A program made the translations under genes and the position numbers. Below, in pieces: positions 6,790 to 41,242 of a DNA stretch of 64,000 nucleotides (position 1 is its first letter; every line of letters starts with the position of its first letter). The DNA comes from Zygnema circumcarinatum SAG 698-1b. Taxonomy: Eukaryota; Plantae; Zygnematophyceae. The notes below the pieces were generated by a model. It had not been told where the DNA came from. It did not search any database and saw nothing but the letters and a program-made list of their open reading frames with translations. The stretch spans positions 2,604,001 through 2,668,000 of the forward strand of contig CM074806.1 in NCBI GenBank assembly GCA_037447605.1, written 5' to 3'.

Positions 6790-6918
6790 CCTCCACATGC
6801 GATAACAACAAACGCAATCTACAAGCCATGTCATGAAACAACACCAACAACAACAGCGTGCAGTGCTGTGCACGCGTGTGCAGAGATGGTCCCCTCCCGC
6901 TACGTTTGGCCATGACAT

Positions 6919-7268
6919 CATGAGCCATGAGTCCATGAGGCCATGAGGCCATGAGGCCATGAGGCCATGAGGCCATGAGGCCATGAGGCCATGAGGCCAT
7001 GAGGCCATGAGGCCATGAGGCCATGAGGCCATGAGGCCATGAGGCCATGAGGCCATGAGGCCATGAGGCCATGAGGCCATGAGGCCATGAGGCCATGAGG
7101 CCATGAGGCCATGAGGCCATGAGGCCATGAGGCCATGAGGCCATGAGGCCATGAGGCCATGAGTCCATGAGGCCATGAGGCCATGAGGCCATGAGGCCAT
7201 GAGGCCATGAGGCCATGAGGCCATGAGGCCATGAGTCCATGAGGCCATGAGGCCATGAGGCCATGAGT
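6919..7268. repeat. Tandem 8-bp minisatellite (CCATGAGG)n, about 43 units, a few CCATGAGT variants
   Basis: Read directly. It explains the ASWPHGLM-repeat ORFs in three minus frames. Confidence 0.97.
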
Positions 7269-15127: not shown

Positions 15128-15237
15128 CACAACACAAAAGGAAGTGGCATTGATCTCACGCTGGCGAGGCCATCAAATGTACATGAACAAAATCATCATG
15201 GGGAACCACGAGGAACTGGTCGCAAAGAACCTGAGTG
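15128..15237 (-). mobile_element. Copy B of SINE-like repeat, flanked by a possible 7-bp TSD CTCAGGT
   Basis: Core GGCATTGATCTCACGCTGGCGAGGCCATCAAATGTACATG. CTCAGGT occurs at 15121-15127 and 15238-15244. Confidence 0.6.
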
Positions 15238-19299: not shown

Positions 19300-19620
19300 T
19301 TGGTGACGTCACTCCCAGTGGTACGGAGGTACATCATGTACGGTAGGCAAATCAAACTTTTCGAGTTCAGCCCCCCTTTGGCACGTGACTCAACGCGTTT
19401 CTGATGCGCCACGTGTCACACAAATGGCGCGTGGTCACATGCCATTGGCTGTAATCGCCAGTACTGTCGCAATAGCGAAATCGTGTCCATTTTTAGAATA
19501 CTCCGTACCGTTTAGTACATGGAACAGTTGGGACGGTGAGGCAGAGGAGCGGTTGACCCGCTTGACCGGACCCGCAAACCAGACCAGAAACCGTCTTCAG
19601 GTTTGGGATGACGTCATGAA
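19300..19620. promoter_or_regulatory. Divergent promoter between ITPK and orphan gene copy 1 with four ACGT palindromes (GTGACGTCAC 19303-19312, CACGTG near 19382, CACGTG 19410-19415, ATGACGTCAT 19608-19617)
   Basis: Motifs read directly. These are G-box/C-box types bound by plant bZIPs (established); function here is inferred. Confidence 0.45.
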
Positions 19621-20854
19621 ACGTCATGAAGTCATCAGCCGGACGGATTGTAGCCCCTTATAGAGCTTTACTGCAATGAAGATTGGAAGCGAAGGGGGGT
19701 TGACAAGCAGGTCCAGAAGCTTAACCTCCTCTTCCCATGGTCAGGATGTAGGTAGAAGGTGCACCTGCTCATCATCTCTCTTCAGGTACGCTGTAGTTTC
19801 TTACCCTTTTTCGGGTCTGGACACATATTTTGCTTTCTGCATGTGCTAAAGCCAATCTACTTCGTGCCACCGTTTGTACACAGCCCTAAGAATTAGCTTT
19901 TCTGAAAGCGCAATTCTTGAAACTTCAGGACGGAAGTGCTGTGCACTTTGCCGACAGCTGCTGATGACGTTTAGCACTTCTGTTTATCCTGAAGGCTTAT
20001 TCGTGGTCCCTGTTTGAACGTGTAGTCCTTGGCGGCGGAGCAATCATATCTTATGTGTTTGCTTTGCGTCAGCCCTCAGAGGACTGAGATTTAGGGTATG
20101 AATAAGCTGCGCTTTGGTGACAGCTATATTGCTGGGCTAGTCAGCTGTATAGTAGCTTCAGGGCGTACATGCGAGCTCACTTTCGTGCCAAAACGTTATC
20201 AACCGGCGACTGCCCTTCTGTACTTTCTCTTGAACTCTGGGTATAGCTGTGGGAGAGCTGTCCATTGGTCATTCAGCAAGTGGAAGAAAATTGTCTAATT
20301 ACTTTTAGAGTTACATTATTCAGTGTCCGATTTAGGGAGGGGGGGGAAAACGGAGAGACAAAGAAGCCGCCCCTCACTTGACTTATCATAGAAGCTGCAG
20401 AGCTTTGTTTATGAATGACAGAGTTGTAAATTGCTGTTAAACGGGTGCGCGCCTTAAGTATCATTAGGTGTTATGTGCGTATGCACTACCTTCTATTGTG
20501 CACTTTTGCAGCTCCCTTGGCTGGTCTTTGTTTGCGAATGGCATTTGTTTTGTTCTGAAGGCTTGTGAAAGATAAACCACTCACCGTAGTGCTGAGTCCA
20601 TGCGTTTATATACATGTTCTTTTTCGCTTTTCACTGCTAACAAGTGCTTCATGATGAAATCTAGCATAGGCTTGTGGAAATCTTTGACGTTCTTTCATAC
20701 AGACTGGAGGTCGCCCTTGGCGACAGTTGGATCGCTGGAACTGGTGTAGCCCTCAGTCGTGTTCTCTGTTCGTTTTAACTATTCTCATTTATGTTCCGTG
20801 GTGAGGTGAAATATTCCAATATGTGTTTTTCGCTTTTTCTCCACTGCAGCTGTC

Positions 20855-21460
20855 ATGGGAAATACGCCAAGCTGGAGTGCGCAGTGCTTTCCTGATCGTC
20901 TAGAAGTGACGGTGGATTTGCGGCGATTCCATGCTGATCTCCCTTATGATTTTGAGGGCTTGGGTGGTAACTTCCACTTGCCTTTCGCGTTAGGACACCG
21001 AACTCTGCGCGTTGGTGACTTCATTGCACTCGCACAACAAGACGTTCCCGTATTGGGACGCGTTGAGGTGGATACTGAGAGGAGGAGAAAAGTTAACTCA
21101 GATCCGGGAAGTCAAACTGTTGATCGTTTGGTTGTGGGAGTTAGCCAGCCTCTCTTGAAGAGTGATTCAGATTGGAAAAAAATCAAGCGACTGGAGACAG
21201 ATATTGGGGCGGTCCTCGTGGAAGTTAGAGTTGTGAGCGATGTTGTCGGCATTTTGAAGATGGAAATGAAGCCGGGAAACTGGCTGCACAGGGGTGGGGC
21301 GTACCTTGTAGGACGGGCTGAGGGTTCTGTGGAGATCTATGTAAGGGGGAGATTTGAAACCCAACAAGATCGGACTAGTTCGCTATTGAATTCTGTCCTA
21401 CTTGGTGCATTAGGACTTGGATCACTGCTCCTCATGCGTCTGGTGAGATACTGTCGTTAA
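20855..21460 (+). CDS. Orphan 201-aa protein, copy 1; putative N-myristoylation (MGNTPS) and C-terminal hydrophobic tail
   Basis: Single coding exon just after an intron acceptor (CACTGCAG CTGTC ATG). ORF is intact in three diverged copies, and about 10 synonymous changes separate copies 1 and 2 in the first ~85 codons. Confidence 0.8.
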   Translation: MGNTPSWSAQCFPDRLEVTVDLRRFHADLPYDFEGLGGNFHLPFALGHRTLRVGDFIALAQQDVPVLGRVEVDTERRRKVNSDPGSQTVDRLVVGVSQPLLKSDSDWKKIKRLETDIGAVLVEVRVVSDVVGILKMEMKPGNWLHRGGAYLVGRAEGSVEIYVRGRFETQQDRTSSLLNSVLLGALGLGSLLLMRLVRYCR

Positions 21461-21605
21461 CCAGTATGAATTCCCGCAAGTTGACAGCCGCGTCGTGATT
21501 TTGTCTGGTAGAATTGTCTCCCTTCTCCCAAAACTCTTCTGTATAATATTGGTGTCGGCATACTGTCTGGCTTGTTGAAGCAATGTCAGACGGGTCGTCG
21601 ATGGG

Positions 21606-21914
21606 TCATTTCGGTGCAGGGGTGGTTTCTGGCGACTCCTCGACCGAATTCAAGACTCCCTTCTTTGCCTGCACCCCCGGGAGGTGGCCATCATAGAGTT
21701 CCACCTGGAGGCCTTGCCTGGGGAAGAGGGCATTCAGAAGACGTGACACCTCCAATTTATGGCTTGCACAGAGCTGGATAGGGTCTATAAGAAGGTCATG
21801 GTCCCTCTTATATACGTTTGCATCGAGGTTTTCTTTCGTTATTTCCTCATCGCTGAGAGTTCACGCTAGTTCCGAGGTCGTCAGCTCAAAGTCCAGCTGT
21901 CTGGGAGAGAGCTC
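21606..21914 (-). pseudogene. Last exon of an unrecognised gene ('gene X'), copy 1, with in-frame TGA at 21861-21863
   Basis: Acceptor TGTCTAG then ELSPRQLDFELTTSELA*TLSDEEITKENLDANVYKRDHDLLIDPIQLCASHKLEVSRLLNALFPRQGLQVELYDGHLPGVQAKKGVLNSVEESPETTPAPK*. The same frame is open in units 2 and 3. Confidence 0.6.
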
Positions 21915-22616
21915 CTAGACAGCTTGATCTACTTCTAGGGGTCAAGCTGGTCAGGAATAGTTGTACATATCGTACTGTGTGAGGAAGGATGACGGTTCTT
22001 ATAACAACTCTACCAACTTCAGGCTCTCATACTTTCAGGTTTTTCATTGCCCGTATCTGTACGTGACCTCGTCTCGGTTTCTGCTGACTTTATTGTGGAC
22101 GAGTTAGGTGATGTGATTACCTCTCATTCGTTCTGAAGGAAGCACGTTTCTACTCAGACGCACCATGTCCCTTTTCAATAATGTGATGCCCCACTTTAAT
22201 CAGCAATTGCAATGAATTACGTATGTGAAATAGCGCACGATAAATGGTTAAGCACAAGAAGGAGAAACAACCTTCCGCAACTGCATGGAAAGCTGGTGCA
22301 ATCGAAATTAAATATTGCATTAGCAAGTTGCTAACGAATGTAGATTTCAACATGTTGCACAGAACAATGGAAAATCGGTCAACGAGGCCGGGTGACGATT
22401 CTTGCAAGTGCGTGCACAACGCTGACAATTTTGCGAGCATATCCAAACCCTCATATCAATGCTACATAAAAAAGGAACTATTTTTTTTGAAAAACACAAA
22501 TTTGACGGACATCAGAAACAGGCAAGTTTATGATGAAGGCTAGACAAAACGAAAAAAGCACAGAACAAGGATCCTTCACATTAAGGCTTACAATTTTTTT
22601 TTACAAATGTCTGCAG

Positions 22617-22699
22617 AAAAGGGAAAATGGCATTGATCTCAGGATGGCGAGGCCATCAAATGTACATGGACGAAATCAGCATGGGGAACCACGAGGCAC
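22617..22699 (-). mobile_element. Copy C of SINE-like repeat, 83 bp, perfect 8-bp TSD GTCTGCAG; empty sites in the paralogous units
   Basis: GTCTGCAG at 22609-22616 and 22700-22707. Unit 2 (about 25132) and unit 3 (about 33555) have a single (G)A/TCTGCAG without the insert. Confidence 0.85.
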
Positions 22700-22826
22700 G
22701 TCTGCAGGCTCTCCTCATGTACAAATCGCTGAGCGTGCCGCCGAACTCAAGACATGACGTGACACCATGGCAGCTGCGTGGCACGAAGGGGGATAACTGA
22801 AAGGCTCCTTTCCCCGGGGAGGTGGT

Positions 22827-22943
22827 CTACTGTACGAACGTGAGCGGCTTCTTCAAGGCCTTCTGGATGTCTGGCGCGATGGTCAGGGGAGTCACAGTGG
22901 GCGCATAGCGCTGGAGAGGTATGCCCTCTTTACTGATCAAGAA
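22827..22943 (-). pseudogene. Duplicated GPX terminal exon, unit 1
   Basis: Acceptor TTGCGCAG then FLISKEGIPLQRYAPTVTPLTIAPDIQKALKKPLTFVQ*; near-identical to 33694-33810. Confidence 0.88.
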
Positions 22944-23658
22944 CTGCGCAATGCGAGAATGCAACCCACTGCCTCGGTCAGCCCTCATTCGTCATATCAG
23001 CTTCGAATTGTCTTTTAGAATCCATGATATGACACGATCACCGAGTACCTTAAATTCGCGTTTCCTCTGTTCATAACTCCCTAACTTATACGGATGGCCC
23101 AATACTCACAGATTCATTGGGATAGCAAGTCATGTGGCTGCGTGTAAAGTCACGTTTGGGGGGGAAACGAAGAGACAAGGAAGTCGCCCCTCACTTGACT
23201 TAATCATAGAAGCTGCAGAGTTTTCTTTATGAATGGCAGAGTTTTAAATCGCTGTTAAACGATTGCGTGCCTTAAGTATACTGATTAGGTGTTATGTGTG
23301 TATGAGCTACTTTCTATTCTGCACTTTTGCAGCTCCCTTGGCTGGTCTTTGTTTGCAACTAGCATTTGCTTTGTTCTGAAGGCTTGTGAAGGACGAACCA
23401 CTCACCATAGTGCTGAGTTCATGTGTTTATGTACATCTTATTTTCGCTTTTCACTGCTAACAAGTGCTTCATGATGAAACTAGCGGCCTTGCGGAAATCT
23501 TTGACGTTCTCTCATACAGACTGGAGGTCGCCCTTGGCGACAGTTGGATCGCTGGAACTGGTGTAGCCCTCAGTCGTGTTCTCTGTTCGTTTTTATGTTC
23601 CGGGATGAAGTGAAATATTCCAATATGTGTTTTTCGCTTTTTCTCCACTGCAGCTGTC

Positions 23659-24255
23659 ATGGGAAATTCGCCAAGCTGGAGTGCGCAGTGCTTTCCTGAT
23701 CGTCAAGAAGTGACGGTGGATTTGCGGCGACTCCATGCTGATCTCCCTTATGATTTTGAGGGCTTGATTGGAAACTTCCACTTGCCTTTTGCCTTAGGAC
23801 ACCGAACTTTGCGCGTCGGTGACTTTATTGCCCTTGCACAACAAGACGTTCCCGTATTGGGACGCGTTGAGGTCGATACTGAGATGCGGAGAAAAGTTGA
23901 CTCAGGTCTGGGAAGTCAAACTGTTGATCGTTTGGTTGTGGGAGTTAGCCAGCCTCTCTTGAAGAGTGGTTCAGATTGGAAAAGAATCAAGCGACTGGAG
24001 ACAAATATTGGGGCGGTCCTCGTGGAGGTTAGAGTTGTGAGCGATGTTGTCGGCATTTTGAAGATGGAAATGAAGCCGGGAAACTGGCTGCACAGGGGTG
24101 GGGCGTACCTTGTAGGACGGGCTGTGGGTTCTGTGTATATCTATGTACGGGGGAGATTTGAAACCCGACAAGATTGGAAAAAATATCTATTGGATTCTGT
24201 CCTAGCTGGACTTGCATCACTGCTCCTCACTCATCTGGTGAGATACTGTCGTTAA
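23659..24255 (+). CDS. Orphan putatively myristoylated protein, copy 2 (198 aa, MGNSPS)
   Basis: Intact ORF paralogous to 20855-21460. Confidence 0.75.
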   Translation: MGNSPSWSAQCFPDRQEVTVDLRRLHADLPYDFEGLIGNFHLPFALGHRTLRVGDFIALAQQDVPVLGRVEVDTEMRRKVDSGLGSQTVDRLVVGVSQPLLKSGSDWKRIKRLETNIGAVLVEVRVVSDVVGILKMEMKPGNWLHRGGAYLVGRAVGSVYIYVRGRFETRQDWKKYLLDSVLAGLASLLLTHLVRYCR

Positions 24256-24478
24256 CCAGTATGAATTTCCGCAAGTTGAGAGCCGCATCGTGATTTTGTC
24301 TGGAAGAATTGTCTCCCTTCTCCCAAACACTCTTCTGTATAAATTTGGTGTCGGCGTACTGTCTGACTCCTTAAAGCAATGTCAGAGGGGTCGTCGCACA
24401 TTTTGATGCCACGACTATGGAACTACATATTAAACATCATCAAGCCTATTTTAATAACCTCAATAAAACCATTGCAGG

Positions 24479-24695
24479 TCATTTCGGTGGCGTTTCCTCG
24501 ATCAAATCCAAGACTCCCTCCTCTGCCTGCACCCCCGGGAGATGGCCATGATAGGGTTCCACCTGGAGACCGTGCGTGGGTATGAGGGCCTTAAGAAGAC
24601 GCGACACCTCCAGTTTTCGGCTTGCACAGAGTTGGATAGGGTCTATAAGAAGGTTATGGTCCCTCTTATACACTTTTGCATCGAGGTTTTCCTTC
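24479..24695 (-). pseudogene. Gene X last exon, copy 2 (5' part replaced by a repeat insertion)
   Basis: KENLDAKVYKRDHNLLIDPIQLCASRKLEVSRLLKALIPTHGLQVEPYHGHLPGVQAEEG...PPK*; about 9 synonymous differences from copy 1. Confidence 0.55.
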
Positions 24696-25075
24696 TTTAT
24701 CCAATCCAATATCGTATCGATAATGTGTCGTATCGGGAACAATACATAGTGTGTATTTTTAGGGAAAGTGCTATTTACAGTGTCCTTTTTCTGAATGTAG
24801 TGTCCTTTTTCGCCGGGCAGCTTGTACAAAGGAAGTTTTAGCGAAAAATGCAGTTTCATACGTTTCAGAATAGATACAGACCTTTTCTCGTCGGGATGGC
24901 CTCACCATCGCGAGTTCAATGAAAGTTTCTTATTCCATATTAATACGATATTATACATTGTCTCGAACCTCAAGGTGTATACAGTAATACCGAGCTATAA
25001 CCCTGACACTAACACACTACAGTATCGAACCTCAAGGTGTATAGTACGGAACACTCCGCCGGACAACCAAAAGTG
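24696..25075. mobile_element. Composite repeat patch replacing several hundred bp of unit 2: MITE-family end (TAGGGAAAGTGCTATTTACA about 24770), SINE-like fragment (24895-24930), 19-bp direct repeat TCGAACCTCAAGGTGTATA (24963-24981, 25025-25043)
   Basis: Absent from units 1 and 3; matches elements at 14183 and 7917. Confidence 0.6.
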
Positions 25076-25267
25076 AAAAACAAGGATCCTTCACATTTAG
25101 GCTTATATTTGAACAATTTTTTTTTACAACTGACTGCAGGCGCTCCTTAAAGTTATGTACGAATCGCTGAACGTGCCGTCGTACTCTGCAAGACATGACG
25201 TGACACCATGGCAGCTGCGTGGCACGAAGGGGGATAGCTGAAAGGCTCCTTCCCCCGCGGAGGAGGC

Positions 25268-25384
25268 CTACTGTATGAACGTGAGCGGCTTCTTCAAGGC
25301 CTTCTGGATGTCTGGCGCGATGGTCAGGGGAGTCACAGTGGGGGCATAGCGCTGGATAGGTATGCCCTCTTTACTGATCAAGAA
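25268..25384 (-). pseudogene. Duplicated GPX terminal exon, unit 2
   Basis: Intact acceptor, ORF and stop; near-identical to 33694-33810. Confidence 0.88.
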
Positions 25385-26125
25385 CTGCGCAATGCGAGAA
25401 TGCAACCCACTGCCTCGGTCAGCCCTCATTCGTCATATCAGCTTCGAAGAGTCTTTTAGAATTCATGATATGACACGATCACCGAGTACCTTAAATTCAC
25501 GTTTCCTTTGCTTATAACTTTCTAACTTATGCAGATGGCCCGATACTCACAGATTCCTTGGGATAACAAGTCATGTGGCTGCGTGTAAACTCACGTTTGG
25601 GGGAGAAACGAAGAGACAAGGAAGCCGCCCCTCACTTGACTTAATCATAGAAGCTGCAGAGTTTTCTTTATGAATGGCAGAGTTGTAAATCGCTGTTACA
25701 CGAGTGCGTGCCTCAAGTATACTGATTAAGTGTTATGTGTGTATGCACTACTGTCTATCGCGCACTTTTGCAGCTCCTTTGGCTGGTCGTTGTTTTTAAA
25801 TGGCATGTGTTTTGTTCTGAAGGCTTGTGAAGGACGAACCACTCACCATAGTGCCGAGTCCAGGCGTTTATGTACATGTTATTTTTCACTTTTCACTGCT
25901 AACAAGTGCTTCATGATGAAACTAGCATAGGCTTGTGGGGCCTTGTGGAAATCTTTGACGTTCTCTCATACAGACCGGAGGTCGCCCTTGGCGACAGTTG
26001 GATCGCTGGAACTGGTGTAGCCCTCAGTCGTGTTCTCTGTTCGTTTTAAATATTCTCATTCGTTTTCCGTGATGAGGTGAAATATTCCAATATTTGTTTT
26101 TCGCTTTTTCTCCACTGCAGCTGTC

Positions 26126-26722
26126 ATGGGGAATAAGCCAAGCTGGAGTGCGCAGTGCTTTCCTGATCGTCTAGAAGTGACGGTGGATTTGCGGCGATTC
26201 CATGCTGATCTCCCTTATGATTTTGAGGGCTTGGGTGGTAACTTCCACTTGCCTTTTGCGTTAGGACACCGAACTTTGCGCGTCGGTGACTTTATTGCAC
26301 TCGCATTACGAGGAGTTCCCGTATGGGGACGCGTTGAGGTCGATACTGAGAGAAGGAGAGAAGTTAACTCAGATCCGGGAAGACAAACTGTTGATCGTTT
26401 GGTTGTGGGAGTTAGCCAGCCTCTCTTGAAGAGTGGTTCAGATTGGAAAAGAATCAAGCGACTGGAGACAAATATTGGGGCGGTCCTCGTGGAGGTTAGA
26501 GTTGTGAGCGATGTTGTCGGAATTTTGAAGATGGAAATGCCGCCGGGAGACTGGCCGCACAGGGGTGGGGCGTACCTTGTAGGACGGGCTGAGGGTTTCG
26601 TGGAGATCTATGTAAGGGGGAGATTTGAAACCCAACAGGATTGGGAAAAAACGCTATTGGATTCTGTCCTACCTGGACCTCGATCACTGCTCGGCATAAG
26701 TCTGGTGAGATACTGTCGTTAA
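26126..26722 (+). CDS. Orphan putatively myristoylated protein, copy 3 (198 aa, MGNKPS)
   Basis: Intact ORF paralogous to copies 1 and 2; the C-terminal tail is less hydrophobic (VLPGPRSLLGISL). Confidence 0.72.
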   Translation: MGNKPSWSAQCFPDRLEVTVDLRRFHADLPYDFEGLGGNFHLPFALGHRTLRVGDFIALALRGVPVWGRVEVDTERRREVNSDPGRQTVDRLVVGVSQPLLKSGSDWKRIKRLETNIGAVLVEVRVVSDVVGILKMEMPPGDWPHRGGAYLVGRAEGFVEIYVRGRFETQQDWEKTLLDSVLPGPRSLLGISLVRYCR

Positions 26723-26869
26723 CCAGTATGAATTCCCGCAAGTTGAGAGCCGCATCGTGATTTTGTCTGTAAGAATTGTCTCCCTTCTCCCAAAAATCTC
26801 TTCTGTATAAAAGTGGTGTCGGCATACTGTTTGGCTCGCTGAAGCAATGTCAGACGGGTCGTCGATGTG

Positions 26870-27057
26870 TCATTTCGGTGCAGGGGTGGTTTCTGGTGGC
26901 TCGTCTATGGAATCCCAGACGCCCTCCTTTGCCTCCACTCCCGGGAGATGGCCTTTGTAGAGTTCCTCCTGGAGGCCGTGCCTGGGCATGAGGGCATTCA
27001 GAAGACGTGACACCTCCAATTTATGGCTTGTACAGAGCTGGATAGGGTCTATAAGAA
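26870..27057 (-). pseudogene. Gene X last exon, copy 3 (truncated by the 5.9-kb block)
   Basis: LIDPIQLCTSHKLEVSRLLNALMPRHGLQEELYKGHLPGVEAKEGVWDSIDEPPETTPAPK*. Confidence 0.55.
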
Positions 27058-27994
27058 TAGAGATAGATAGGGATATATCTGGATCCCCCCTCCCCCCTCC
27101 CCCCTCCCTCCCCCCTCTCCCCCATCCCCCCATCCCCCCTCCCTCCCTCTCCCCCATCCCCCCTCACCCCTCCCCCCTCCCTCCTGCCCCCTCCCCTTCC
27201 CCCTCCACTCCAGCTCACCCCCACTCCTCCCCCTTCTGTTCTCCTCCTCCCCGACCCCCCCTCCACTCCGCCTATCATCTCGCTCCCTTTGCCGTCCGTC
27301 ACGCACCCAGCCGGAATTTCAAATGACACCAGTTTCTATGTGCGTAACGATCCAACTGAAATTCTTTGCTTTGGTGTGAGCACATGCCGCGACACATACC
27401 CTACCGTATAGGCAACACGTGGCGTGTTCTGGAGCAAAGTCGATGGACTTTTGCTGTCCAAAATAAGTACAGCCCCTCAGGGCTGTCCTCAGGGCGGACG
27501 AGACCTGTTCCGTGCCGTTCCGTTCCATGTCGTCCGCTCGGTCTGGCGGCGTTCCTTGCGAGCCGTTGTCACAAACCGCCAACAGCGAACAGCGGCTCCG
27601 CCGTTCGACCGCCGAACTTTACGGGGGCTGTAACAGAACAGCGAACAGCCGTCGGGCTGTCGCCCCCCCTCCCGCCCTTCGCGTCGCGGCGGGTTGGCTG
27701 CTCGCCTGCTGCTCGAGCCGCGTCGTCGTGGTTTCAAGGCGGGGGGTGGCGGGCACCGCGCGGCTTTTGGGTGTTCGTCCTAGGGTGGCGCTTTGATTGG
27801 ACTTTCTTCAACTGCTTGAAGCCTGGAGGTGGAAACTGAGGCGGAAAGTGCTTTCTTTATCTCCGAAACGAACTTTTTCAACTAGACTTTACTTATTAAA
27901 CTTCAACTGTCCGGATGCGCGAAACTTCATCAGCAAAGTTGAACCACGAAGCAAAATTTGAATGAAGTTGAGAAAACTTGGAGCGTGAAATGGC

Positions 27995-28090
27995 AGCCTT
28001 AGGTCTTTAGTGAGCGGTTCATCGTTGTTCCCCATGGACATGTTGTTGTCGTCCATGAACATTTGATGGCATCGACATCGTGAGACCAAT
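27995..28090 (+). mobile_element. Copy E of SINE-like repeat (diverged)
   Basis: GTCCATGAACATTTGATGGCATCGACATCGTGAGACCAAT matches the family core. Confidence 0.55.
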
Positions 28091-29294
28091 ATGGATGGTC
28101 GTGTGCGATATGTTTATATTTCTTGTTAAAACTCGGACTTTTAGAACTAAAAAAGTAGGGCCTTCAAACTTTTGGGAAAATGAACCCCCCCCCCTCCCCT
28201 TCCGTCCCCTCCCCTGGCCTCCCCTCCCCGCCTCTCTCCTCCCCTCCCCCCCCCTCCCCGCCTCTCTCCTCCCCTTCCCCCCCCTCCCCGCCTCTCCCCT
28301 CTTCTTTCCCTCCCCTCCCCGCCATTGCCCTCCCCTTTCGTCCCATCCCCTCCCCTCCCCTGCCCCAAGTCATGATCTAGCACTACAAGCACGAAGGGTT
28401 TCCCATCAAGATCGGCAAGCATGGCGACAGCCGCTGACTCTACTCTCTCTCTCTCTCTCGCCTCTGCTCTGCTCTCTTTCTTGCGCTGATGTGTGGGAAG
28501 GAGAAAACAGGGGGGTGGAATAGCCAAAATTAAAGGGCGAACTTTCAGAAGATGGGGCGAGATATCCAGAGGGGGGGGGATATCATTTCCTGCTTTTATT
28601 TTGTTTTAAAGTCAATACGGACGTGTGTACGGCGTCCTAGGGACAGTTCAAGTGCCGTGGTTGGGCCGCCATTAGCCAACCATTGGCTGCAATCCAGCCG
28701 CTGCACTGCCATTGCCCTTGGAGGCCGCCGCGACGTGACTTGGTGTGACGTCGCATGACGCACGTGACATCATCCTGAAGTGCTGCCGTTAAATCGAGCA
28801 GGTTGAGAACAAATTAGAAAAGTAACATAAAAGTCGAACAATACTCTCACGACCATCCTAAAGAGCAACGCCACTTCCCGGCACGCCCTGCAAGCAGCAC
28901 TCGCAGTCGCCCCCAGCGCAATTCCCATTTCTCTAATCGTTTCGAACAACGAGCCGGCCGTCCCGTTCCTCGCCGTTACAGTTACAGTTCCCGCGGCAAT
29001 CTCTGCGATGCGTCTTTCCGTACAATACCGTCGCGCCCACAGCTACTGTAGCGGCCAAACAGCGCGCAGCGGAACGAGGCGCAAAGCGACAAAGGGCGGG
29101 CGGGCGGGCGGGCGGGGCCGCCCCCCGCTGGGTCGCCGCAAGTGCGAACTTGCCACGTGGAGACGCAGCACCAATGGCGCGACGCCACGTGTTGACGTAA
29201 CTGTTCGCTGCCGGCGGCTCCGCAAACGGACAAAAGGGACAGCTGCGCGGGGGCGCACAAAGGCGCCCGCGCGGAGGGGAACGGCACCGCGCTC

Positions 29295-29295
<1 letters not shown>

Positions 29296-29345
<50 letters not shown>
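29296..29345. repeat. (GCT)n microsatellite, about 16 units, upstream of the root-cap gene
   Basis: Read directly. Confidence 0.95.
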
Positions 29346-29496
29346 GATCGACCCGCAGCGAGGGGGCGGAGGGACACAGGAAGAGGGAGGGAGGGAGGGA
29401 GAAAGAGAGAGGGGGAGAGGTAGAGATAGGAAGAGGGAGGGAAAGAAAGAGATAGACAGAGCGACGGAGGGAGGAGAGTGAGCGAGAGACGGCGCA

Positions 29497-32352
29497 ATGG
29501 CTGCAAACGGGAGAAGTTGGGCGGCGGTCGTTGGGGTGCTCTGCGCTGCATTGCTCCAGTCCTTGCTTCCCGCCGTGGTAAGATCAGGCTTCGGAGAAGG
29601 CACTAATGATAAGTCGGCACTAGAAGTGAAAACTTGTGGAAAGGCTTGTCGTGGTATTAACATTTTTGGCAGTTAGACCTTCTTGAAATGAAAACGAATG
29701 TATCATAATTCCAACCCCTGAAACCCCCCAGGTTGGTCCTGATTTCTCCTCTGTGAGCACTTTGCGCAGAGCGGCAGCTCCATTGTGGGATCGCTGTTCT
29801 GCGACAAGTGCTGGGACGGCTCCTTCAGCGGCACCCTCGACCTCCTGGACGCGCTCACCCCTGTAAGGCTTCTCCTCATCCATCCATGTCCCAAAATCCC
29901 TCTTTGCGCCATATCTCTCTTTCTCTTCATCCGCACCTCCATCACCCTCTCTCTCTCTCTCCGACTCTCTCCTCTCTAGTTTCATTCTTGCAATGTGATG
30001 TCCACCACTTGAGTGGGAGTATTGTAGGCTGACGCCGTGGTGCCACGTGTGCCCTAATGCGGTGCCAGGTGAGCATCAACTGCAGCATCAGTTCCGTCGT
30101 GGCCGGGCAGACCTCCTACACGTACGTGTGGGCCACGGGGGGCACCCCTGCAAGCGGAGGCTTCCAGGTAACCACGTCACAAACTCTCATCCTCAAAAAT
30201 CATGCTAAGTCAATAAATAAACTAATAAAGTGTACGTTTTCAATAGGATAATTTTCATTGTAATATAGATTTTTTTTTTTTGCTAATCAGCTCCTTCAAC
30301 ATAAATGTTGAATTTCGTTGATTCTCTCTCCCTATTCTTCGACCCCTCTCTTCCTCCCTCCCCCTGCCTCTCTCCGCCTCACCATTGGGGATGCATGCAT
30401 GCGCGCATATGCATGCCCGCAGGTCGCCATCAGCGGCGCTACGGGCACATCGGCGCTCATTTCCGCGAACGCGAAGTTCCTGAGCGCGCTCTTCGTGGGC
30501 GGCAATCCGCTCAGCGGCCAGATCGCGACCGCGCAGATCGACGGCTGCTACGTGACGGCCTCCAGCGGGCTCTGCCCCGTCAACATCCTCAACAACGGCC
30601 AGTGCAGCTCCGGAGGCGTGCTGGTCAGCTCTCTCTCTCTCTCTCTCTCGCTCTTTGCGTCCCATTCTGTTTTACGCTTTGACCGCCTTTTTCTCCATTT
30701 GCTTCTCCTACTCCTTCGGCCTCCGTCTCCGTCTACTCCTTTGTGTCCCTCACCCTTTGAAGACTAGTTTCTGTTTTTTTTGCTCTCTACCACCTACTCT
30801 TTCCCAATATTTTAACTCTCCCGTCTTTCTCTCTCTCTCTGTTTTCTCTAATAATTCCTTGTACCTGTATTGCTCCTCTCCCTTCCGCCTCGTTTTCGCT
30901 CTGCCCAGCCTTTATCTCGTTCATCCTCCTCTGTCAACACTTCCTTCTCCATCCACTTTCCTGGTTGCCCTCCCACGCAATCTTCCTTCTTCCTCCCTCT
31001 TCCCTATTTGTCTCCCTGCTTCTCACTCTTCCTCCCCCTTATTACTCTCCAGGGTAACGCATGGATCAGCGCCGTGACTCTCACAAACTTGGCTTCCACC
31101 TCCGCCGACATCAGCCTGGGCGTGCAGGCGTGCTACGCCCCCTCCATCCGGGACGCGAGCTGCCCCGCCGCGTCTGCCCCCTCTCCCGGGGGAGTGGGAG
31201 ACCCCCACTACACTGGGGCCGATGGCTCCCGCTTCGACTTTTCAGGTATGATTTTTAAGATCTGTAATAACATGTTAAGGTTGAAAGTTTTTGCGTTTCT
31301 AGCCTTTTTTGAGTGTTCAGCATGAAACCTTTGAACACTGCTTAATGGTAATACAGTTAGCGGTGAGAAATTGCAAATTCTTCAAAGTTGATGGATGTGG
31401 ATGCGTGCATTGCGAGCAGGCGAACCCAACACCACCTTTTGCCTCGTCAGCGACGCCCACCTCCACATCAACGTGTTCTATGGCGGCCGTTACGGGCGGT
31501 GGGGCAGCAACCCGCACAAGGCCCTCACATGGATCCGCCAAATCGGCGTCCTTTGGGGCCACCACACCATCCTGCTGGCGGCACGGGAAGGCGCCAGGTG
31601 GCAGTACGATGGCGGCTATCTGGGCCGCCTCATGATCGACGGTCAGGATGTGGAGCTCGGGCAGGCGGGAGACTCTGCCGTCCGCGCCAATGGCGACATT
31701 GAAGTGAAGTGGCTCGCGGCGAAGAGGCGCAGCGGCGATGACTTTGTGGATGTGTTCCACATCAAGGTCGCGGATGTGCTGAGTTTGAGGCTCACATTGC
31801 GTCCAGAAATCGCGATGTTGAGGACCCCCACGGACGGCGTTGTGCACTTCGACTTTGAAATGCCGGTGGCCGACTTGTCGGACAATGCGCATGGGGTTTT
31901 AGGGCAGACCTTCCGCTCCGACCACAAGGATAGACTGTGAGTGCTGACAGACATCAAGCGAAACCCCTCTCCTTTCGCATTATTTCGCCCTACCTGCAAC
32001 GAGTCATGCCGTGCTTTGGTTTGTTTCTGATTGGAGCCCAATTATGCACAGGATACATTTGACTGACACGTTGTTTTGAGAATGACGTTTGGGTGGCAGT
32101 GCGAATCAAAAGCTGGAGTACAGTGAGCTTTTCGGGGCCGAAGTGGTGCCGGGAGACGACGCGGAAGGGTTTCTGGACGGCAGCGTGGCGAGCTACCGCT
32201 CCTCGGGCCTCCTCCGCGCGGACTGCCTCTTCGCGCGCTTCGTCCGAGCGCGCGAGCGCGTGCAGGGGACGGAGCGCGCCACGGAGCTCGCGTCCTCCGC
32301 CGCGCGGAACATGCTCGGCGAGAGCGTCAAGAGCTTCGCGCTGTTGCAGTAG
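29497..32352 (+). CDS. Secreted protein: signal peptide, Ole e 1-like N-terminal segment, root cap / LEA-related domain; exons 29497-29577, 29770-29862, 30069-30167, about 30423-30624, about 31053-31246, about 31420-31937, about 32100-32352
   Basis: MAANGRSWAAVVGVLCAALLQSLLPAV; IVGSLFCDKCWDGSF...VSINC; GDPHYTGADGSRFDFSG...FCLVSDAHLHIN...TWIRQIGVLW; LSDNAHGVLGQTFR; Y-R-SSGLLRADCLFARF (PF06830-type root cap motifs). Confidence 0.88.
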
Positions 32353-33693
32353 GCGACGCGACGCGACGCGATTAGGGTTGTGGGCTCGCCCGCTCGAGCG
32401 ACCGAGCGCGGGGGCTTTGGCTCTCTCACACCGCTCCTTTGTGAAGCGCGGTTTGTTCGTGGGATGAGCGAGTGCTCGCGTTGGTAGCGGATGGGAGGTG
32501 TGGGCCGTTCTGCAACAGAAGGGTCCTTTGGCGGTAGTCGTAGGTAGTTCGACGGCGCACAGTGTGGCGAAGCAGTGCGTGTATGGTGTGTACTTGATGT
32601 GGAACAAATATGTATATATCACGAGATTTTTTTTCTGGGTTGAAACGTGTTTTATGTGTTGGTCCGCGCTTCAAGAAACTGCAACCGAGTGGTCAATGCA
32701 TGGACACAGTTCCTTCGTGGCATTCGAGGGGCCGCGAGGGTTAACTATACACATAAAGTAAAAAGCCCCTCAAACCGACCCGAGCGAAGACGCAAACTCC
32801 CCCTCCCACTCCCCCCTCCTCCTCCCTCCGCCCTCCCTCCCCTCTCCCCTCTCCTCCATCCCCCCTCCCCTCTCTCCCCTCCCCCCTCCCCCCACTTCCC
32901 TCCGCCTTCCCCCCTCCCCCCTCTCCCCACTTCCCTCTTCCCTCTTCTTCCCCCTCCCACATCCCCCCAACTTCAGGCTGTCATACTTTCAGGTTTTCAA
33001 TTGCCCGTATCTGTATGTGACCTCGTCTCGGTTTTTGCTGACTTTATTGTGAACGAATTATTAGGTGATGCAATTACCTCTCATTCTACCTGAAGGAAGC
33101 ACGTTATTACTCAGACGCCACATTCACCATGCCTCGTTTCAATAACGAGATGCCCCAATTTAATCAGCAATTGCAATGAATTATGTGCAATAGCGTGCGA
33201 TAAATGGTTAAGCACAAGAAGGAGGAACAACCTTCCGCAACTGCATGGAAAACTATTGCAATCGAATTAGTTTTTGCATTGGCAAGTTGCTAATGAATGT
33301 AGGTCTCAACATGCTGCACGGAACAATGGAAAACGGGTCAACGAGGTGCGAAGTGCGTGCACAAGGCTGACCATTTTAGAAGCATATCCAAACCCTCATA
33401 TCAATGATACATAAAAAAAAGAACTATTTTTTTTTGAAAAACATAGATTTGACGGACATCAGAAAAAGGCAAGTATAATGAAGGCCAGACAGAACCAAAA
33501 AAAGCACAAAAAAAGTATCCTTCACGTTAAGGCTTATGTTTGAACATTACAGCTGTCTGCAGGCTCTCCTTAAGTTATGTACAAATCGCTGAGCGTGCCG
33601 CCATACTCTGCCAAGACATGACGTGAGACCATGGCAGCTGCCCACTGCCACGAAGGGGGATAACTGAAAGGCTCCTTTCCCCGCGGAGGAGGT

Positions 33694-35892
33694 TTACTGT
33701 ATGAACGTGAGCGGCTTCTTCAGGGCCTTCTGGATGTCTGGCGCGATAGTCAGGGGAGTCACAGTGGGCGCATAGCGCTGGATAGGTATGCCCTCTTTAC
33801 TGATCAAGAACTGCGCAATGCGAGAATGCAACCCACTGCCTCGGTCAGTCCTCATTCGTCATATCAACTTCGAAGAGTCTTTTAGAATCCATGATATGAC
33901 ACGATCACCGAGTACCTTAAATTCACGTTTCCTCTGTTCATAACTTTCGAACTTATGCAGATGGTCCGATACTCACACATTCATTGGGATAGCAAGTCAT
34001 GTGGCTGCGTGCAAATTCGAAAGAAAACATTGGAAAGTGCTCAAAAGCCAAGTTTGCAGGCTCGCTGGCGGATATGTGTTTCAAAAACCCTAAACCGGGG
34101 ACTTCGGTTTTCTTACATTTTGTCTCATTTTTTCTTTATTTTCCCTCACACGCCTTTCTTCTTCTGTTAAATTTCCTACTTCTTGCTTTGGGTTTTTCGG
34201 GTTTTCAGGGTTAAGCAAACTGAACAGTTCAAGTCACCATACCTTAGCAAAGTTCCAGTCGATTTTCCCAGGCAATGAAGCCTTCAGAAATTCATATGCA
34301 CGGTTGTTTACAGGGCAGCACTCGGTCGAACGGGATAAGCAGTTCGCGAAACCAGTAAGCGCACCTTCAGGGCACATGGGATCGTTCACAGTAACCTTTG
34401 CAAACATTGGAAACGTGGCGGAATAATTGGCAGCAGCAAAAGCTTTGATCTCGGCATTTGACCCTGCACAGAAATACCTCCTGCCTTAAGCAGTGCCGAT
34501 TCCACTACCTTTAAAAACTTTAATTAATAGCTTCACATCAAGTTGGTGCAGCGTCGTTTTCTGGCTAATTCTCTAAAATAACGTTTTAAACGTTTTTTTT
34601 TTAATAACATTTTTTTCTCTAAAAAAAACAGCCTACAAGCAGAGTAATGCCTGGTATGGTTGTGATCAGCATGTCACTATCACACTTGTGGGGAAGCTCT
34701 CATCTGACATGAGAAGACACTTTTGACACATTGAATACACACGGAGCCATTTGAACCCTATTCAATTTTAAGCGTGTGACAGCATAAGCGCTTTCTCCAT
34801 GTACTATTCTGTTCAAAGAAGTTGCAACAAGTTGACAAGAAATAAAAGAGTGTCTTTCGAGTGACAAAATACTGCATGTTAATTGCAGGTCGAGAAAATT
34901 AAACTGCTGTAAAGTGCTGGATACTATGCTCCAGCATTCCAATTCAAGCTAAACTATTGCAGCATGCACGAACTTATCCGACAGAGGGACTCACCGGGCT
35001 CTTGGAGGTTGAATTGATTGCAAGGAAAGGCTAAAACTGTAAAACCTTCCGGTCCATACTGCTTCTGTAGCTGCACTAGCTCTTCGTAATTCTGGGAGCA
35101 GATAAAATGTGGTTAGCCAATGGCTGACAAACCTAAGCCAATATGGTTCCAAAGCTCTAAGAGCAGGGCAGACTTTCGTCAAGAGCCATTTCACAATGCC
35201 CTCTCATTAAACAGAAGCAAATGCTCTTTTCTTGCGTAAACTGTAGGCTATTTTTCTAAGTAATGCAAAACGAATTGTCCACCGCATTGCCTTCCCATGT
35301 TTGCATCGCCTTTAGGAAAGCAACACTAAATTTCATGAGCTCAAAGCTTCGCTCTTCAAAATTGTGGCGAATGAGATGACAAATTCTCATCAGACCTTTC
35401 ACAAAGTATCTGGAAGCCTGAAGTCGCGCTGATGACTTACCCTCTGTGTTAGACCGCAGAAACTTGCAACGTTGATTACCAATGAGACCTGCATGAGAAA
35501 AAGGCTCACCAAAGACGTCAGAGTGCATGACCAACCAAGAGATTCAACGCCATCACACCTCCAATCTGACCAGTCTGACAACTGTTGTAGTTTTCAAAAT
35601 CCACATCAAATCTAGCCACGTTGCACGATTTTCATAAAGTAGACAAATAGCGATTCATTTCAAGCATCCATTCGAGTAATAACCTTCATTAAGCTAGCCA
35701 AGATCTATTCAAGCTTCTGCGACGGAGATGGAGAAGGGGACGGACCTGGCCGACCAGCTGGCGCAGAGACACGGGTCGCCCGTCAATATCGAACAGGCTG
35801 AGGTCGTAGAATCTCGCCTCGGCGGCAGCAGCGGCAGAAGGCGCGAGAATGGCGACGAGCAGCAGGGCTGCAGCTGCGGCAGCCATGGCCAT
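33694..35892 (-). CDS. GPX: Secreted Cys-type glutathione peroxidase-like protein with a 4-Cys insertion; exons 35892-35746, 35488-35441, 35091-34995, 34463-34243, 33810-33694
   Basis: Signal peptide MAMAAAAAALLLVAILAPSAAAAAEA; FYDLSLFDIDG; VINVASFCGLT; LAFPCNQFNLQEPG; IDWNFAKFLISKEG...RYAPT. The C/Q/W triad is present and phases are consistent. Confidence 0.95.
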
Positions 35893-35939
35893 GGGCTTGC
35901 GGAATGCAGGAATGAACGCTGCAACAGGCGGACCATTCC

Positions 35940-36390
35940 AACGATTGCAATGGTTACCAACCATTGATTGTCAATCATTGCCAACCATTGCCAACCATTG
36001 CCAACCATTGCCACTGGTCAGAAACCATTGGACTCTGGTAAGGGGAATTTCATTGAACTCACAATGGCGAGGCCATCAAATGTACATGGACAAAGGCATG
36101 ATGTGGAACCACGAGGGACTGGTCGCAAAGGACTCTGGACTTTTGGTGCAGTACCGTATCAACCATTGCCATTTGCCAATGGTTCCGACCATTGGCGTAA
36201 AACCTGTCCAAAAATTGCCAATGGTCGGAAACCATTGGACTTAATGGTTACCAACCATTGCCAACCATTTCCAATGGTCGCAACCATTGGATGCCAATAG
36301 TTGCCTGCCAGTCCAACGGTTGCAAACCGCTGGCCGTCCAACCATTGCCATCCGATGGTTGTCCAATGGTTGCCGATCCAACTAATGGTA
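35940..36390. repeat. Degenerate 10-bp minisatellite (CCAACCATTG) interleaved with its complement (CAATGGTT), immediately 5' of the GPX start
   Basis: Read directly. Related, more decayed units occur at about 41640-41900. Confidence 0.8.
36039..36129 (-). mobile_element. Copy D of SINE-like repeat, 91 bp, perfect 9-bp TSD GGACTCTGG
   Basis: GGACTCTGG at 36030-36038 and 36130-36138, flanking the family core. Confidence 0.82.
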
Positions 36391-37451
36391 CAACACTGCG
36401 CTGCACAGCATACTGTACAGTATCACGGCCCCCGTACCTATGCTGACGCCACTCAAGCCAAGCGCACGGGCTGTCTAAGAGGCGGCTGCTCCCTCGTGGT
36501 TCTCACTCCTGCCTCGCCCTCTCGTGGTTCTCGCCCGAAGGCCGTACGGAAAAACAGAGCAGGAAAATGACTTATTGTACGGATGCCATGCTGGCAGTGT
36601 TACTCTGTACGGCATTACTCCGGGCTCTCCTTCGCACGTGCGATCGAGCGAGGGCCTGCCGGGCGGCCCCCAGACGGCCTCCCCTCGCCTCGCCTCGCCC
36701 GCGCTGCGGCCCGCGGCCCTGCGTTGGGAGCAGGCCCTGAGCCATTGCAAGGCGTGGAAGGGCAGGCACGTCGCGGGAGCTGCACGGTCTCTCTCTCTCC
36801 CCTTCTCTTCCACTCTCTCTTCCTCTCCCTGGCTCTCTCTCCCCCCTACACGCTCGTTGTCATGTTGGGGAAAATTATTTTGTTTCTGCTTTAGAATCAT
36901 GGCATTTTCAAGCAAAATATGATGACTGTTTATTGGCTGTGCGTCTTTGCTTTGAATTTTTTAAAAAGAATTATCCCTTGTACTGATTCCAGTGCTGTTC
37001 TATGGCGCTCTCGCTTTCAATATGCATCAATTTGAATTATTTTGTTTTATAATTATCTCTCCTTTGCCCGTTACTCGGCCTTTCAGAGCCTACATTGTCC
37101 ATTGCTAAGGTTTCCTTAACGGGATCATCCTTTTCCTTTGGTCCATTTCTTAATTAAGGTCTTTCTTGGAAAATTGGAACCACCATTTTATTCACCACGC
37201 AGATGAAATGGAATCCCTTCTTACGAATTCCAAATTTTCTAGAAAACATTCTTCTGTCCGTTCCTTCCGTCCCTTCCGTCTCCATTCTGGCAGGACCTAC
37301 TCCCTACTCCATGTCTATTCGTGCGAGTTTCAAACCAGCATACCTACTTTCCCCATGGTTTTCCCCCTTCTTGTATCTCACCTTTCTCCCTTTACAACCT
37401 CACGTTCCTTCTCCTTCATTTCCAGGTGAAGGCCTCCAATCGCGAGTGAAG

Positions 37452-40400: not shown

Positions 40401-41242
40401 AAACAAACAAACAAGTCGGTTTTTTGTTTACTTTGCATACGTGTGCAGGTGGCTTCCTCCGTTACTCCTTCGGAACTTGTATCGTTCTATGCGAACGGTG
40501 TGGATGCGAACATTACAACGAAGGCGATGCGGCTGAATGCAGTGAGCGGATCGGTGGGGACTTCGTTTGGAAATTTTACGAGTACAGTTGAGAGCGCATT
40601 CAGTCTCTTGAATTTGAACCGAGTTCTGAGTGATACGTTCGTTGGAGTGACGGCTCAGGAGATCAAAACGTCGACGTATTCTGTCATGCAAGGAGAGAAC
40701 GGGACTGTGTTCTACTCGCACACGGAGAGGTTCAGTTTTCCGTTTTATGTTTACGTCCAGTACAGCATCTACAATGGTAATGTCTTCTGCTGAGAGGGCC
40801 TCTCATCGAGTTTCTGCTTTATCTATACCATTTCATTTTGTACCTACTTTTTTTGTTGCAGCATCGTCTGCTGCTTTCTTTCCCCGGTGAGCTCTGAATT
40901 TACGCTAAATTCCCATTTAATCTGGCAGAGGGATCGAGCTTCGAGCTTCTTGGAAATTTCAAACATGGCTTCAATTTTGAAAAATCAACTGCTTTTTTTG
41001 GTGACCGGAACGAAAAGCAAAGCAATTTTCAAAGCGGAGGAGGAGTCTACGATTCGAGCACACCGGGATGGGGGGAGTCGAGGCAGAACTTCAACTACGA
41101 GAGCAATTTCCAGGGCTGCTATTCTCGGAAATACCGCCAAGCGAACTATACCTTTTTTTACGACAAAATTTCCAAAACATGTCCGCCCTTGGAGGGGGGG
41201 ACTGACTCGAGGAGGGAGGGCGCTGTACGGAGGGCGCGCTGA
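37452..41242 (+). CDS. Peptide-N4-(N-acetyl-beta-glucosaminyl)asparagine amidase A (acidic PNGase A family), copy 1, 8 exons, signal peptide
   Basis: EWSLVVLTWS...GRQYDRLGDVFFDG; TEEP...KWSFEADVTRF; VGNVVDSTYTGIYNV; LPRNIYRAELE...NDEFYWSN; GVFRETQAYLDG...YPVIFTGGVNPYWWRPVVGIGAF..PTYVLDITPFVGRLVDGKNH; WFVDAILHLWLD; GCYSRKY. Confidence 0.93.
38805..39116 (+). other. Non-canonical GC-AG intron in PNGase A copy 1
   Basis: Exon ends ...AAGCAG|GCAAGC with no nearby GT. The homologous intron in copy 2 is AAAAAA|GTGAGG, and phase 0 fits the next exon. Confidence 0.75.

Follow-up and report, generated by a model that had tools for sequence, protein, structure and literature searches.

A tandem array of three units lies in a 64,000-nucleotide stretch of the genome of the zygnematophycean alga Zygnema circumcarinatum SAG 698-1b (GenBank assembly GCA_037447605.1, contig CM074806.1, positions 2,604,001 to 2,668,000, forward strand); we refer to this whole stretch as the window, and all coordinates given here are positions within it. 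The array repeats a small protein-coding gene on the + strand together with the 3' end of a convergent glutathione peroxidase (GPX) gene on the - strand. Copy 1 of the small gene appears to be a conserved and functional parent, and copies 2 and 3 are, in our moderately held view, shortened paralogues that have evolved under relaxed constraint and are probably still expressed, rather than products of an amplification for dosage.

Organization of the tandem array

Self-comparison of the window reveals a head-to-tail direct repeat of three units, with pairs of units differing by 9-10%, and it confirms the original prediction of direct repeats with a shared breakpoint. We denote the gene-bearing block as A and the GPX-derived block as B; all pairs of A blocks and all pairs of B blocks are ~90% identical (blastn), the repeat spacings are 2804-2858 and 2406-2467 bp, and the self-comparison shows no inverted repeats. 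Unit 1 consists of A1 (20341-21842, + strand; ~90% identical to 23158-24396 and 25599-27057), a 170-bp spacer (21843-22012) without counterpart in units 2 or 3, and B1 (22013-23151, - strand), which duplicates the 3' flank and last exon of GPX with a portion of its last intron and is 84-91% identical to 32967-34018. About 6 nt (junction 1, 23152-23157) separate the end of B1 from A2 (23158-24700, + strand), which is followed by a 368-bp spacer (24701-25068), unique apart from a fragment at 24895-24930 of an element resembling a miniature inverted-repeat transposable element (MITE), and by B2 (25069-25592, - strand), a shorter copy of the GPX 3' end with 90% identity to 33500-34018. Junction 2 (25593-25598), built like junction 1, leads into A3 (25599-27057, + strand). 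The third B block, B3 (32967-34018, - strand), is the resident 3' end of the real GPX gene and includes the 3' flank and untranslated region (UTR), the last exon, and 208 nt of the last intron up to the breakpoint. The earlier estimate of 2.4-2.8 kb per unit is correct for units 1 (2817 bp) and 2 (2441 bp) but not for unit 3, in which the A and B blocks are 5.9 kb apart, and the cassette is real but does not contain the three genes proposed, each array unit being one gene plus one gene fragment.

The two B-to-A junctions are alike. In each, the B block ends at the position equivalent to 34018 (23151 and 25592), ~6 nt intervene, and the G-run that starts the A block begins at the position equivalent to 20341 (23158 and 25599), linking the last GPX intron to a point ~520 nt upstream of the small-gene ATG; there is no chimeric open reading frame (ORF) across the junction. 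Junction 2 is a copy of junction 1, as expected if a single non-homologous join was later amplified by unequal crossing-over.

It is scarcely credible that the array is an assembly artefact, generated by placing diverged haplotypes or mis-joined contigs in tandem. The assembly is scaffolded, as reflected in N runs at 44401-44410 (10 nt) and 56711-56810 (100 nt), but these are the nearest gaps, both lie outside the array, and the array itself is in gap-free sequence without N runs. The B-to-A junction is moreover a tandem-duplication signature that collinear haplotypes do not make, and it is present twice, with diverged flanks. The units also carry private indels, and unit 1 alone has an 83-bp MITE-like insertion (22617-22699) with an 8-bp target-site duplication, GTCTGCAG, at 22609-22616 and 22700-22707. 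Neither of the other two B copies has an insertion at this site (33555-33562 and 25132-25139), indicating that the element inserted after the duplication. The gap-free sequence, the private indels, the MITE-like element with its target-site duplication, and the 9-10% divergence together argue strongly against an assembly duplication. We note that this element (~83 bp) is dispersed, with further copies in the window at 15133-15216 and 36051-36133, and the partial copy in the unit 2 spacer.

The small gene and its protein family

The small-gene ORFs in copies 1, 2, and 3 are 201, 198, and 198 amino acids (aa) long, are mutually 87-88% identical, and match no Pfam family. The closest relative found in a word-index search is P0001, a 250-aa protein from four RNA-type run assemblies that is 63% identical to the small-gene product. 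P0001 extends past the ORFs in the window, and tblastn places its C-terminal part in a second exon; a Closterium relative has an intron at the matching place, just after the hydrophobic helix. On the basis of this alignment and a splice model, copy 1 is predicted to have a first coding exon of 196 codons (20855-21442, + strand), whose ATG lies 5 nt beyond a CAG acceptor and which is followed by a GTGAGA donor at 21443, and, behind a further CAG acceptor, a second coding exon of 53 codons (21620-21781, + strand) that ends with a TAG stop codon at 21779-21781 and encodes a TPPIYG tail. Copy 2 has an open first coding exon of 193 codons (23659-24237, + strand) and a putative second exon (24478-24585, + strand), reached through a presumed new acceptor and ending at a TGA (24583-24585). 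Copy 3 similarly has an open first coding exon of 193 codons (26126-26704, + strand) and a second exon (26884-26991, + strand) ending at a TGA (26989-26991), with the TPPIYG codons following in frame after the stop. The predicted spliced products are 249 aa for copy 1, and 228 aa each for copies 2 and 3. The proposal that every unit retains an intact ORF thus holds for the first coding exon, but not for exon 2, in which copies 2 and 3 have a common premature TGA and copy 2 has lost its original acceptor. The TPPIYG stretch (PPxY-like; 21740-21781, corresponding to P0001 residues 236-247) is kept in copy 1, and is not conserved in the wider family.

Although the small gene was initially described as an orphan, a full HMMER scan recovers 14 cluster representatives, of which those with names are from Netrium digitus and several Closterium strains; a profile search to widen the family added two more members only. 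As judged from these similarities, the gene is a member of a small family restricted to Zygnematophyceae-type algae. Proteins of Closterium sp. NIES-64 (CAI5955259.1), Closterium NIES-68 (GJP55125.1), and Netrium digitus (EukProt EP00270_P020380) belong to this same family (E values of 1e-12 to 1e-43) and have in common with the small-gene product the MGNxxS start, the family invariants W107, G118, G157, and an R-F-E motif, and the C-terminal hydrophobic helix; however, they are only 31-49% identical, and the tail after the helix is not conserved family-wide. The Closterium locus also differs in that the gene is present in single copy, with GPX not found within 10 kb. Comparison of the small gene with P0001 gives a nonsynonymous divergence (dN) of 0.25-0.30 with saturated synonymous divergence (dS), indicating that the small gene has long been under purifying selection.

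The N-terminus of the family follows the pattern M-G-N-x-x-S/T, with G2 present in 16 of the 17 members and N3 nearly invariant. The N-myristoylation consensus (PROSITE PS00008) is M-G followed by G-{EDRKHPFYW}-x(2)-[STAGCN]-{P}, and the starts of copies 1, 2, and 3 (MGNTPSW, MGNSPSW, and MGNKPSW, respectively) conform to it, giving a putative modification site. AlphaFold2 returns beta-rich models (pLDDT 88-90, pTM 0.77-0.81), with a helix predicted at residues 170-195; spliced copy 1 has ~50 residues after this helix, which is long for the tail-anchored class, compared with five in the unspliced ORF. Overall, the product of the small gene is predicted to be a protein of ~250 aa that combines a beta-rich domain with an MGNxxS start of the N-myristoylation type and a hydrophobic helix at the C-terminus. 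Foldseek searches of the PDB with both the full model and a helix-less model gave a best TM-score of ≤0.2 (E > 0.006), and the family may represent a new fold or domain family. Rows of START/Bet v 1 type in the Foldseek output are noise at these TM-scores.

The region upstream of copy 1

The prediction that units 2 and 3 lack the original upstream region is supported, as no part of 19.3-20.34 kb is repeated elsewhere in the window. The unique region upstream of copy 1 (19300-19786, + strand), situated between the array and an ITPK gene (start near 19190, - strand; identity from PF17927), is a candidate for the promoter and a first non-coding exon. Two G-boxes (CACGTG) and two ACGTCA motifs are present at 19382-19626, between the divergent ITPK and copy 1 genes. 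Among the upstream regions of the three copies, only that of copy 1 has these motifs, and ITPK and copy 1 may share the cluster as a bidirectional promoter. A strict donor-like site, CAG/GTACG, occurs just once, at 19786, although a single match is not significant (~0.4 expected by chance). Because a donor-like site upstream and a strong polypyrimidine tract with a CAG acceptor 5 nt before every ATG fit such an arrangement, it is plausible that the A-block break falls inside a 5'-UTR intron. The original prediction had the breakpoint joining GPX intron 4 to this 5'-UTR intron. On the GPX side, the breakpoint at 34018 is indeed 208 nt into the last intron, which is intron 4 if 34243-34470 is a single exon, whereas the 5'-UTR-intron side is no more than plausible. 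Alignment of the P0001 5' UTR to 19.3-20.85 kb gave no signal above that of shuffled sequences.

A 71-nt block (20719-20789 in copy 1) is invariant in all three copies, an outcome reached by 27 of 5000 permutations. A conserved TGACGT, ~170 nt ahead of the ATG, adjoins its start, and the motif and the block together extend from ~170 to 65 nt upstream of each ATG (20685-20789, 23502-23590, and 25956-26060), within the presumed 5'-UTR intron. This element could serve as an internal promoter, or it could be a small exon of the 5' UTR. A structured RNA or small nucleolar RNA was also considered for the 71-nt block and dropped, as folding of the conserved blocks gives z scores of +0.4 to -0.9 and there is no Rfam match; an Rfam scan of 18-37 kb found no credible RNA family. 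We regard it as very unlikely that a single promoter upstream of copy 1 serves all three genes, with a shared 5' exon being spliced to any one of the three acceptors. If it did, three diverged membrane-protein isoforms, one full-length and two tail-less, would be produced from a promoter-less tandem array.

Divergence of the three copies and their likely status

Copies 2 and 3 have in common a TGA that is 18 codons ahead of the normal stop and cuts off the TPPIYG tail, a 9-bp deletion in the helix, and the substitutions D104G, D116N, and R173W at positions where the outgroup agrees with copy 1. These shared changes indicate that a single duplicate, which had been altered beforehand, gave rise to both copies 2 and 3. 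Each also has changes of its own. Copy 2 has a deletion that took out the original acceptor along with 12 nt at the start of exon 2, and an insertion of ~80 nt, the CAG at the end of which maintains the frame and restores a hydrophobic run of 19 residues; copy 3 has L144P, at a hydrophobic position conserved in the family. The Kyte-Doolittle hydropathy of the helix (19 residues) is 1.84, 2.22, and 1.32 for copies 1, 2, and 3, respectively, and residue 4 is different in each of the three.

The copies also differ in how many amino acid changes they have gained. In a relative-rate test, copy 1 has a single derived residue, compared with 11 in copy 2 (p = 0.004) and 13 in copy 3 (p = 0.001), and the branch omega values are 0.46 for copy 1 (including the stem common to copies 2 and 3), 0.86 for copy 2, and 1.06 for copy 3, with dS equal over the three branches (0.045-0.048). 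Within codons 1-87, copy 1 has five synonymous changes and no replacements. The exons of copies 2 and 3, in contrast, have changed by 4.3-4.4%, a noncoding rate (3.5-4.6% for noncoding positions), and on each of the three branches dN is greater than dS over codons 156-196. The distribution of indels is different: the noncoding parts of the unit have 10 events in 769 columns, whereas the 588 columns of exon 1 have a single event, which preserves the frame. When only copies 2 and 3 are considered, the noncoding rate predicts 4.6 indels over these 588 coding columns, and none is seen. The simulated neutral chance of having no stop codon is 0.37-0.38 per copy, and the joint chance of having neither a frameshift nor a stop is ~0.002. 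At exon 1 of all copies the acceptor, donor, ATG context, and MGNxxS start are intact.

Copy 1, with its unique upstream DNA, ancestral residues, and full C-terminal tail, has the features of the conserved and functional parent gene. For copies 2 and 3, our reading is that constraint has been strongly relaxed, yet the frames have been open for most of the time since duplication, and we think it somewhat probable that they are C-terminally shortened paralogues, predicted still to be expressed, rather than a dosage amplification. Dosage selection, as originally proposed, would preserve sequence, and no sign of it is seen on copies 2 and 3; the proposal is not supported, in view of their omega values (0.86 and 1.06), their 11 and 13 derived residues to only one in copy 1, the shared premature stop, and the weakened helix of copy 3. 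An alternative, one that we consider rather unlikely, is that copies 2 and 3 are plain pseudogenes, duplicated without promoter and first exon and never expressed, with exons that are open by chance or through homogenization. Several observations weigh against the interpretation we favor and in this direction: omega near 1, L144P in copy 3, R173W in both copies, and the weak copy 3 helix (hydropathy 1.32) fit dead pseudogenes equally well, and substitution at the noncoding rate, the common premature stop, and loss of the original acceptor in copy 2 also point this way. In addition, the cluster of G-box and ACGT motifs and the only strict donor are upstream of the junction, and no matching protein is found in 5.8 billion sequences that include transcriptome assemblies, although the species itself is apparently absent from them; exact look-ups of the ORFs in public assemblies likewise returned no record. 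The favored interpretation is weakened further in that the noncoding site patterns are star-like and the ((2,3),1) order rests on five shared coding characters only, the indel expectation derives from 10 noncoding events only, and transcription, start site, and splice-site use are predicted for every copy from sequence alone. Nonetheless, pseudogenes would not be expected to have avoided both frameshifts and stops in two copies (joint chance ~0.002), to have kept the acceptor, donor, ATG context, and MGNxxS start intact in all copies, to have acquired in copy 2 a replacement acceptor that keeps the frame and restores the 19-residue hydrophobic stretch, or to have retained the invariant 71-nt block adjoining TGACGT upstream of every ATG.

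The same retention of ORFs and splice signals could reflect adaptive diversification, with the three gene bodies encoding functionally distinct isoforms, perhaps expressed from one promoter via a shared copy 1 5' exon. The excess of dN over dS in codons 156-196 on all three branches and the different residue 4 in each copy are in keeping with this, and, owing to where the breakpoint falls, every unit retains a polypyrimidine tract of its own, with a CAG acceptor 5 nt ahead of the ATG. However, the counts are tiny, with five to seven replacements per branch where dN exceeds dS, the changes fall on positions that are conserved in the family, and the conserved tail is lost. Use of one promoter would need read-through of 2.8-5.3 kb across poly(A) sites, and the shared 5' exon is itself only inferred. 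We therefore view diversification as distinctly improbable, and prefer relaxed-constraint paralogues as the description of copies 2 and 3.

Mosaic divergence among the units

Variable sites are over-dispersed along the repeat, with an index of 3.25 that is reached by none of 5000 permutations. One block that is alike in all three copies is at 20695-20960, and another corresponds to codons 88-155, where dN and dS are both low. In the B blocks, the GPX last exon and 90 nt of intron are better conserved in the fragments (22827-23033 and 25268-25474; resident 33694-33900) than are the flanks, which is odd for dead fragments; this block is not limited to the mature mRNA and has no stable fold. A test for pairwise gene conversion gave no significant tract, and each pair of copies agrees about as often as the others do; recent pairwise conversion therefore does not account for the mosaic. 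We leave the mosaic divergence as arising either from an old three-way homogenization or from mutational heterogeneity, with function also being possible.

The resident GPX gene and its copied fragments

The body of the resident GPX gene, from stop codon to first coding exon, is at 33694-35964 on the - strand and encodes the motifs VNVASFCG (Cys-type), FPCNQF, and WNF. Pfam GSHPx (PF00255) matches three of its exons, with the best (E = 6e-12) passing the cut-off and the other two being partial. The last exon (33697-33810, - strand; TAA stop codon at 33694-33696) can be aligned with residues 137-168 of GPX proteins of solved structure (169 aa). In its GSHPx domain, its three motifs, and its usual C-terminal exon, the resident gene resembles plant-type glutathione peroxidase genes (PF00255; structures 2v1m and 2p5q), from which the two extra pieces differ in having the last 38 codons and non-coding flanks only. 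The coding copies of the last exon are at 22830-22943 in B1 (- strand; 96.8% identical to the real exon) and at 25271-25384 in B2 (- strand; 97.6% identical), and B1 and B2 otherwise contain non-coding flanks and part of the last intron. None of the other GPX exons recurs anywhere in the 64-kb window, and the catalytic exons are absent from B1 and B2. The view that these pieces are passengers is thus upheld: because nothing beyond the 3' flank, the last exon, and a portion of the last intron was copied, the available evidence supports B1 and B2 being non-functional fragments that are unable to encode a peroxidase.

The adjacent stretch at 32967-33560, copied at 22013-22616, had been proposed to be the last exon of a further gene ('gene X'), but we find no coding support for this and reject it. 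The resident stretch has no ORF above ~58 aa, and the 101-aa frame of the unit 1 copy is split over three frames in the resident copy, the two differing by indels of 1, 2, 4, 7, and 14 nt. There is no Pfam match in the stretch, and it is absent from unit 2. Two convergent genes have their stop codons on either side of this stretch, which is thus most readily interpreted as 3' UTR and intergenic DNA.

We also considered whether the GPX fragments might be kept because they give rise to read-through RNA that regulates GPX, being antisense to its last exon and 3' splice site, an action that is possible on sequence grounds only and that we judge highly improbable. The fragments are downstream of copies 1 and 2 and opposite to them in orientation, and they have perfect matches to the mature GPX mRNA in runs of 24-41 nt within the exon and 3' UTR, which is enough for the perfect complementarity of ≥21 nt to a target mRNA that is expected of a natural antisense or pseudogene-derived siRNA locus; runs of 65 and 79 nt of perfect identity span the GPX exon-intron boundary. 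The complementarity on which the original prediction relied is therefore real (perfect runs of 27-41 nt in the mature mRNA), but the arrangement needed for a hairpin is not found: the fragments are oriented as GPX is, and there are no inverted pairs of ≥100 nt in 17-37 kb that could give a hairpin precursor. Fragment-specific changes are depleted in 33694-33900 (6 of 207 positions, compared with 26 of 245 outside; p = 0.0015), in a window that was chosen post hoc. However, the conserved block takes in 90 nt of intron, identity to the fragments is no higher than 88-89% over the 3'-UTR portion of the mRNA, and comparable conserved blocks in the A part suggest mutational or conversion mosaicism. 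The fragments also begin ~1 kb past the small-gene stop codons, and antisense RNA would require copy 1 and copy 2 transcripts to run at least 1 kb beyond them.

There is a precedent in rice, in which a survey describes pseudogene-derived antisense transcripts and small RNAs that act on the parent gene (PMC2708354). When the layout alone is compared, the likeness is that of a fragment with long perfect identity to the parent mRNA that is located downstream of, and opposite to, another gene; because the fragment has this position relative to the small gene, read-through from the small gene would be antisense to the parent GPX. The array differs from the rice examples (PMC2708354) in having no inverted arrangement, and in that the conserved part extends beyond the mature mRNA.

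The 5.9-kb segment of unit 3

A GC-richer segment of 5.9 kb (27058-32966), flanked by C-rich low-complexity arrays at 27084-27232 and 32797-32968, is present only in unit 3. Inside it, and outside the repeat, is the one other gene in the vicinity, a Root_cap-family gene with several exons (~30318-32352, + strand; limits approximate). Two of its exons match PF06830, each below the cut-off (22.2 and 13.6 vs 27 bits), with the domain split over the exons, and homologues that are 51-63% identical, including one from Closterium, are named Root cap and contain PF06830. The match of A3 to A1 ends 12 nt past the stop codon, whereas A1 and A2 share 49 nt more. Two histories are possible: either the segment was original and was lost from the short units, or it was inserted into unit 3, replacing ~220 bp. 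The insertion history is the easier one to reconcile with a simple unequal crossover, although insertion of an intact multi-exon gene would itself be unusual. Synteny with Closterium, in which the gene is single copy and GPX is not nearby, does not separate the two. C-rich arrays of the TCCCCCC or CCCCT type recur in the window, being also found at 28186-28366 and 52064-52339, in addition to the two that bracket the 5.9-kb segment.

Other features of the window

The window has a second tandem pair, consisting of two PNGase A-like genes (PF25156 C-terminal domain) at 37203-40793 and 43333-46296 (both + strand), with blocks that are 69-88% identical, and the region seems to be prone to tandem duplication. 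Plant-type ITPK, bZIP, and PNGase A genes are all found in the window; taken with the distribution of the small-gene family and with Root_cap homologues closest to those of Closterium, they suggest a streptophyte alga in or near the Zygnematophyceae. There is also a near-perfect (93-97%) tandem array of a 24-nt motif at 6908-7268, one frame of which reads as a repeated SWPHGLMA.

Origin and significance of the array

As judged from its layout, the locus is an ordinary tandem segmental triplication of known type. We propose that a single non-homologous event would have joined the last intron of GPX (- strand) to a site ~520 nt ahead of the convergent small gene's ATG (+ strand), giving a head-to-tail duplicate, and that unequal crossing-over between the two units would then have added a third unit and copied the junction. 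The duplication and crossing-over steps were probably close in time. Later changes would include the MITE insertion in unit 1, the deletion and replacement in unit 2, and the gain by unit 3 (or loss from units 1 and 2) of the 5.9-kb Root_cap segment.

Partial and chimeric tandem duplicates with non-homologous junctions, expanded by unequal crossing-over, are described in Drosophila (PMC4069613; PMC5460883), where there is little support for simple dosage effects of tandem duplicates (PMC5460883). The array is like these in having head-to-tail units with breakpoints inside two neighboring genes, with one gene copied whole or nearly so and the other as a fragment, and in the reuse of the junction by added units. 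It differs in being old (9-10% divergence) and in a reference assembly rather than a known segregating variant, and in having three units with later internal remodelling and no chimeric ORF over the junction.

The locus thus provides a clean and datable case of tandem duplication with breakpoints inside two genes, for which the outcome appears to be one conserved parent, two fast-evolving and shortened paralogues that are open after ~4-5% divergence per lineage, and dead fragments of the neighboring gene. Annotation of the genome should be corrected for the second exon of the small gene, the GPX pseudo-exons, and the non-existent 'gene X'. New biology would follow only if shared-promoter splicing or antisense control of GPX proves to be true. 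The array nonetheless supplies three natural variants of an alga-specific protein family that has a confident predicted fold and no solved relative.

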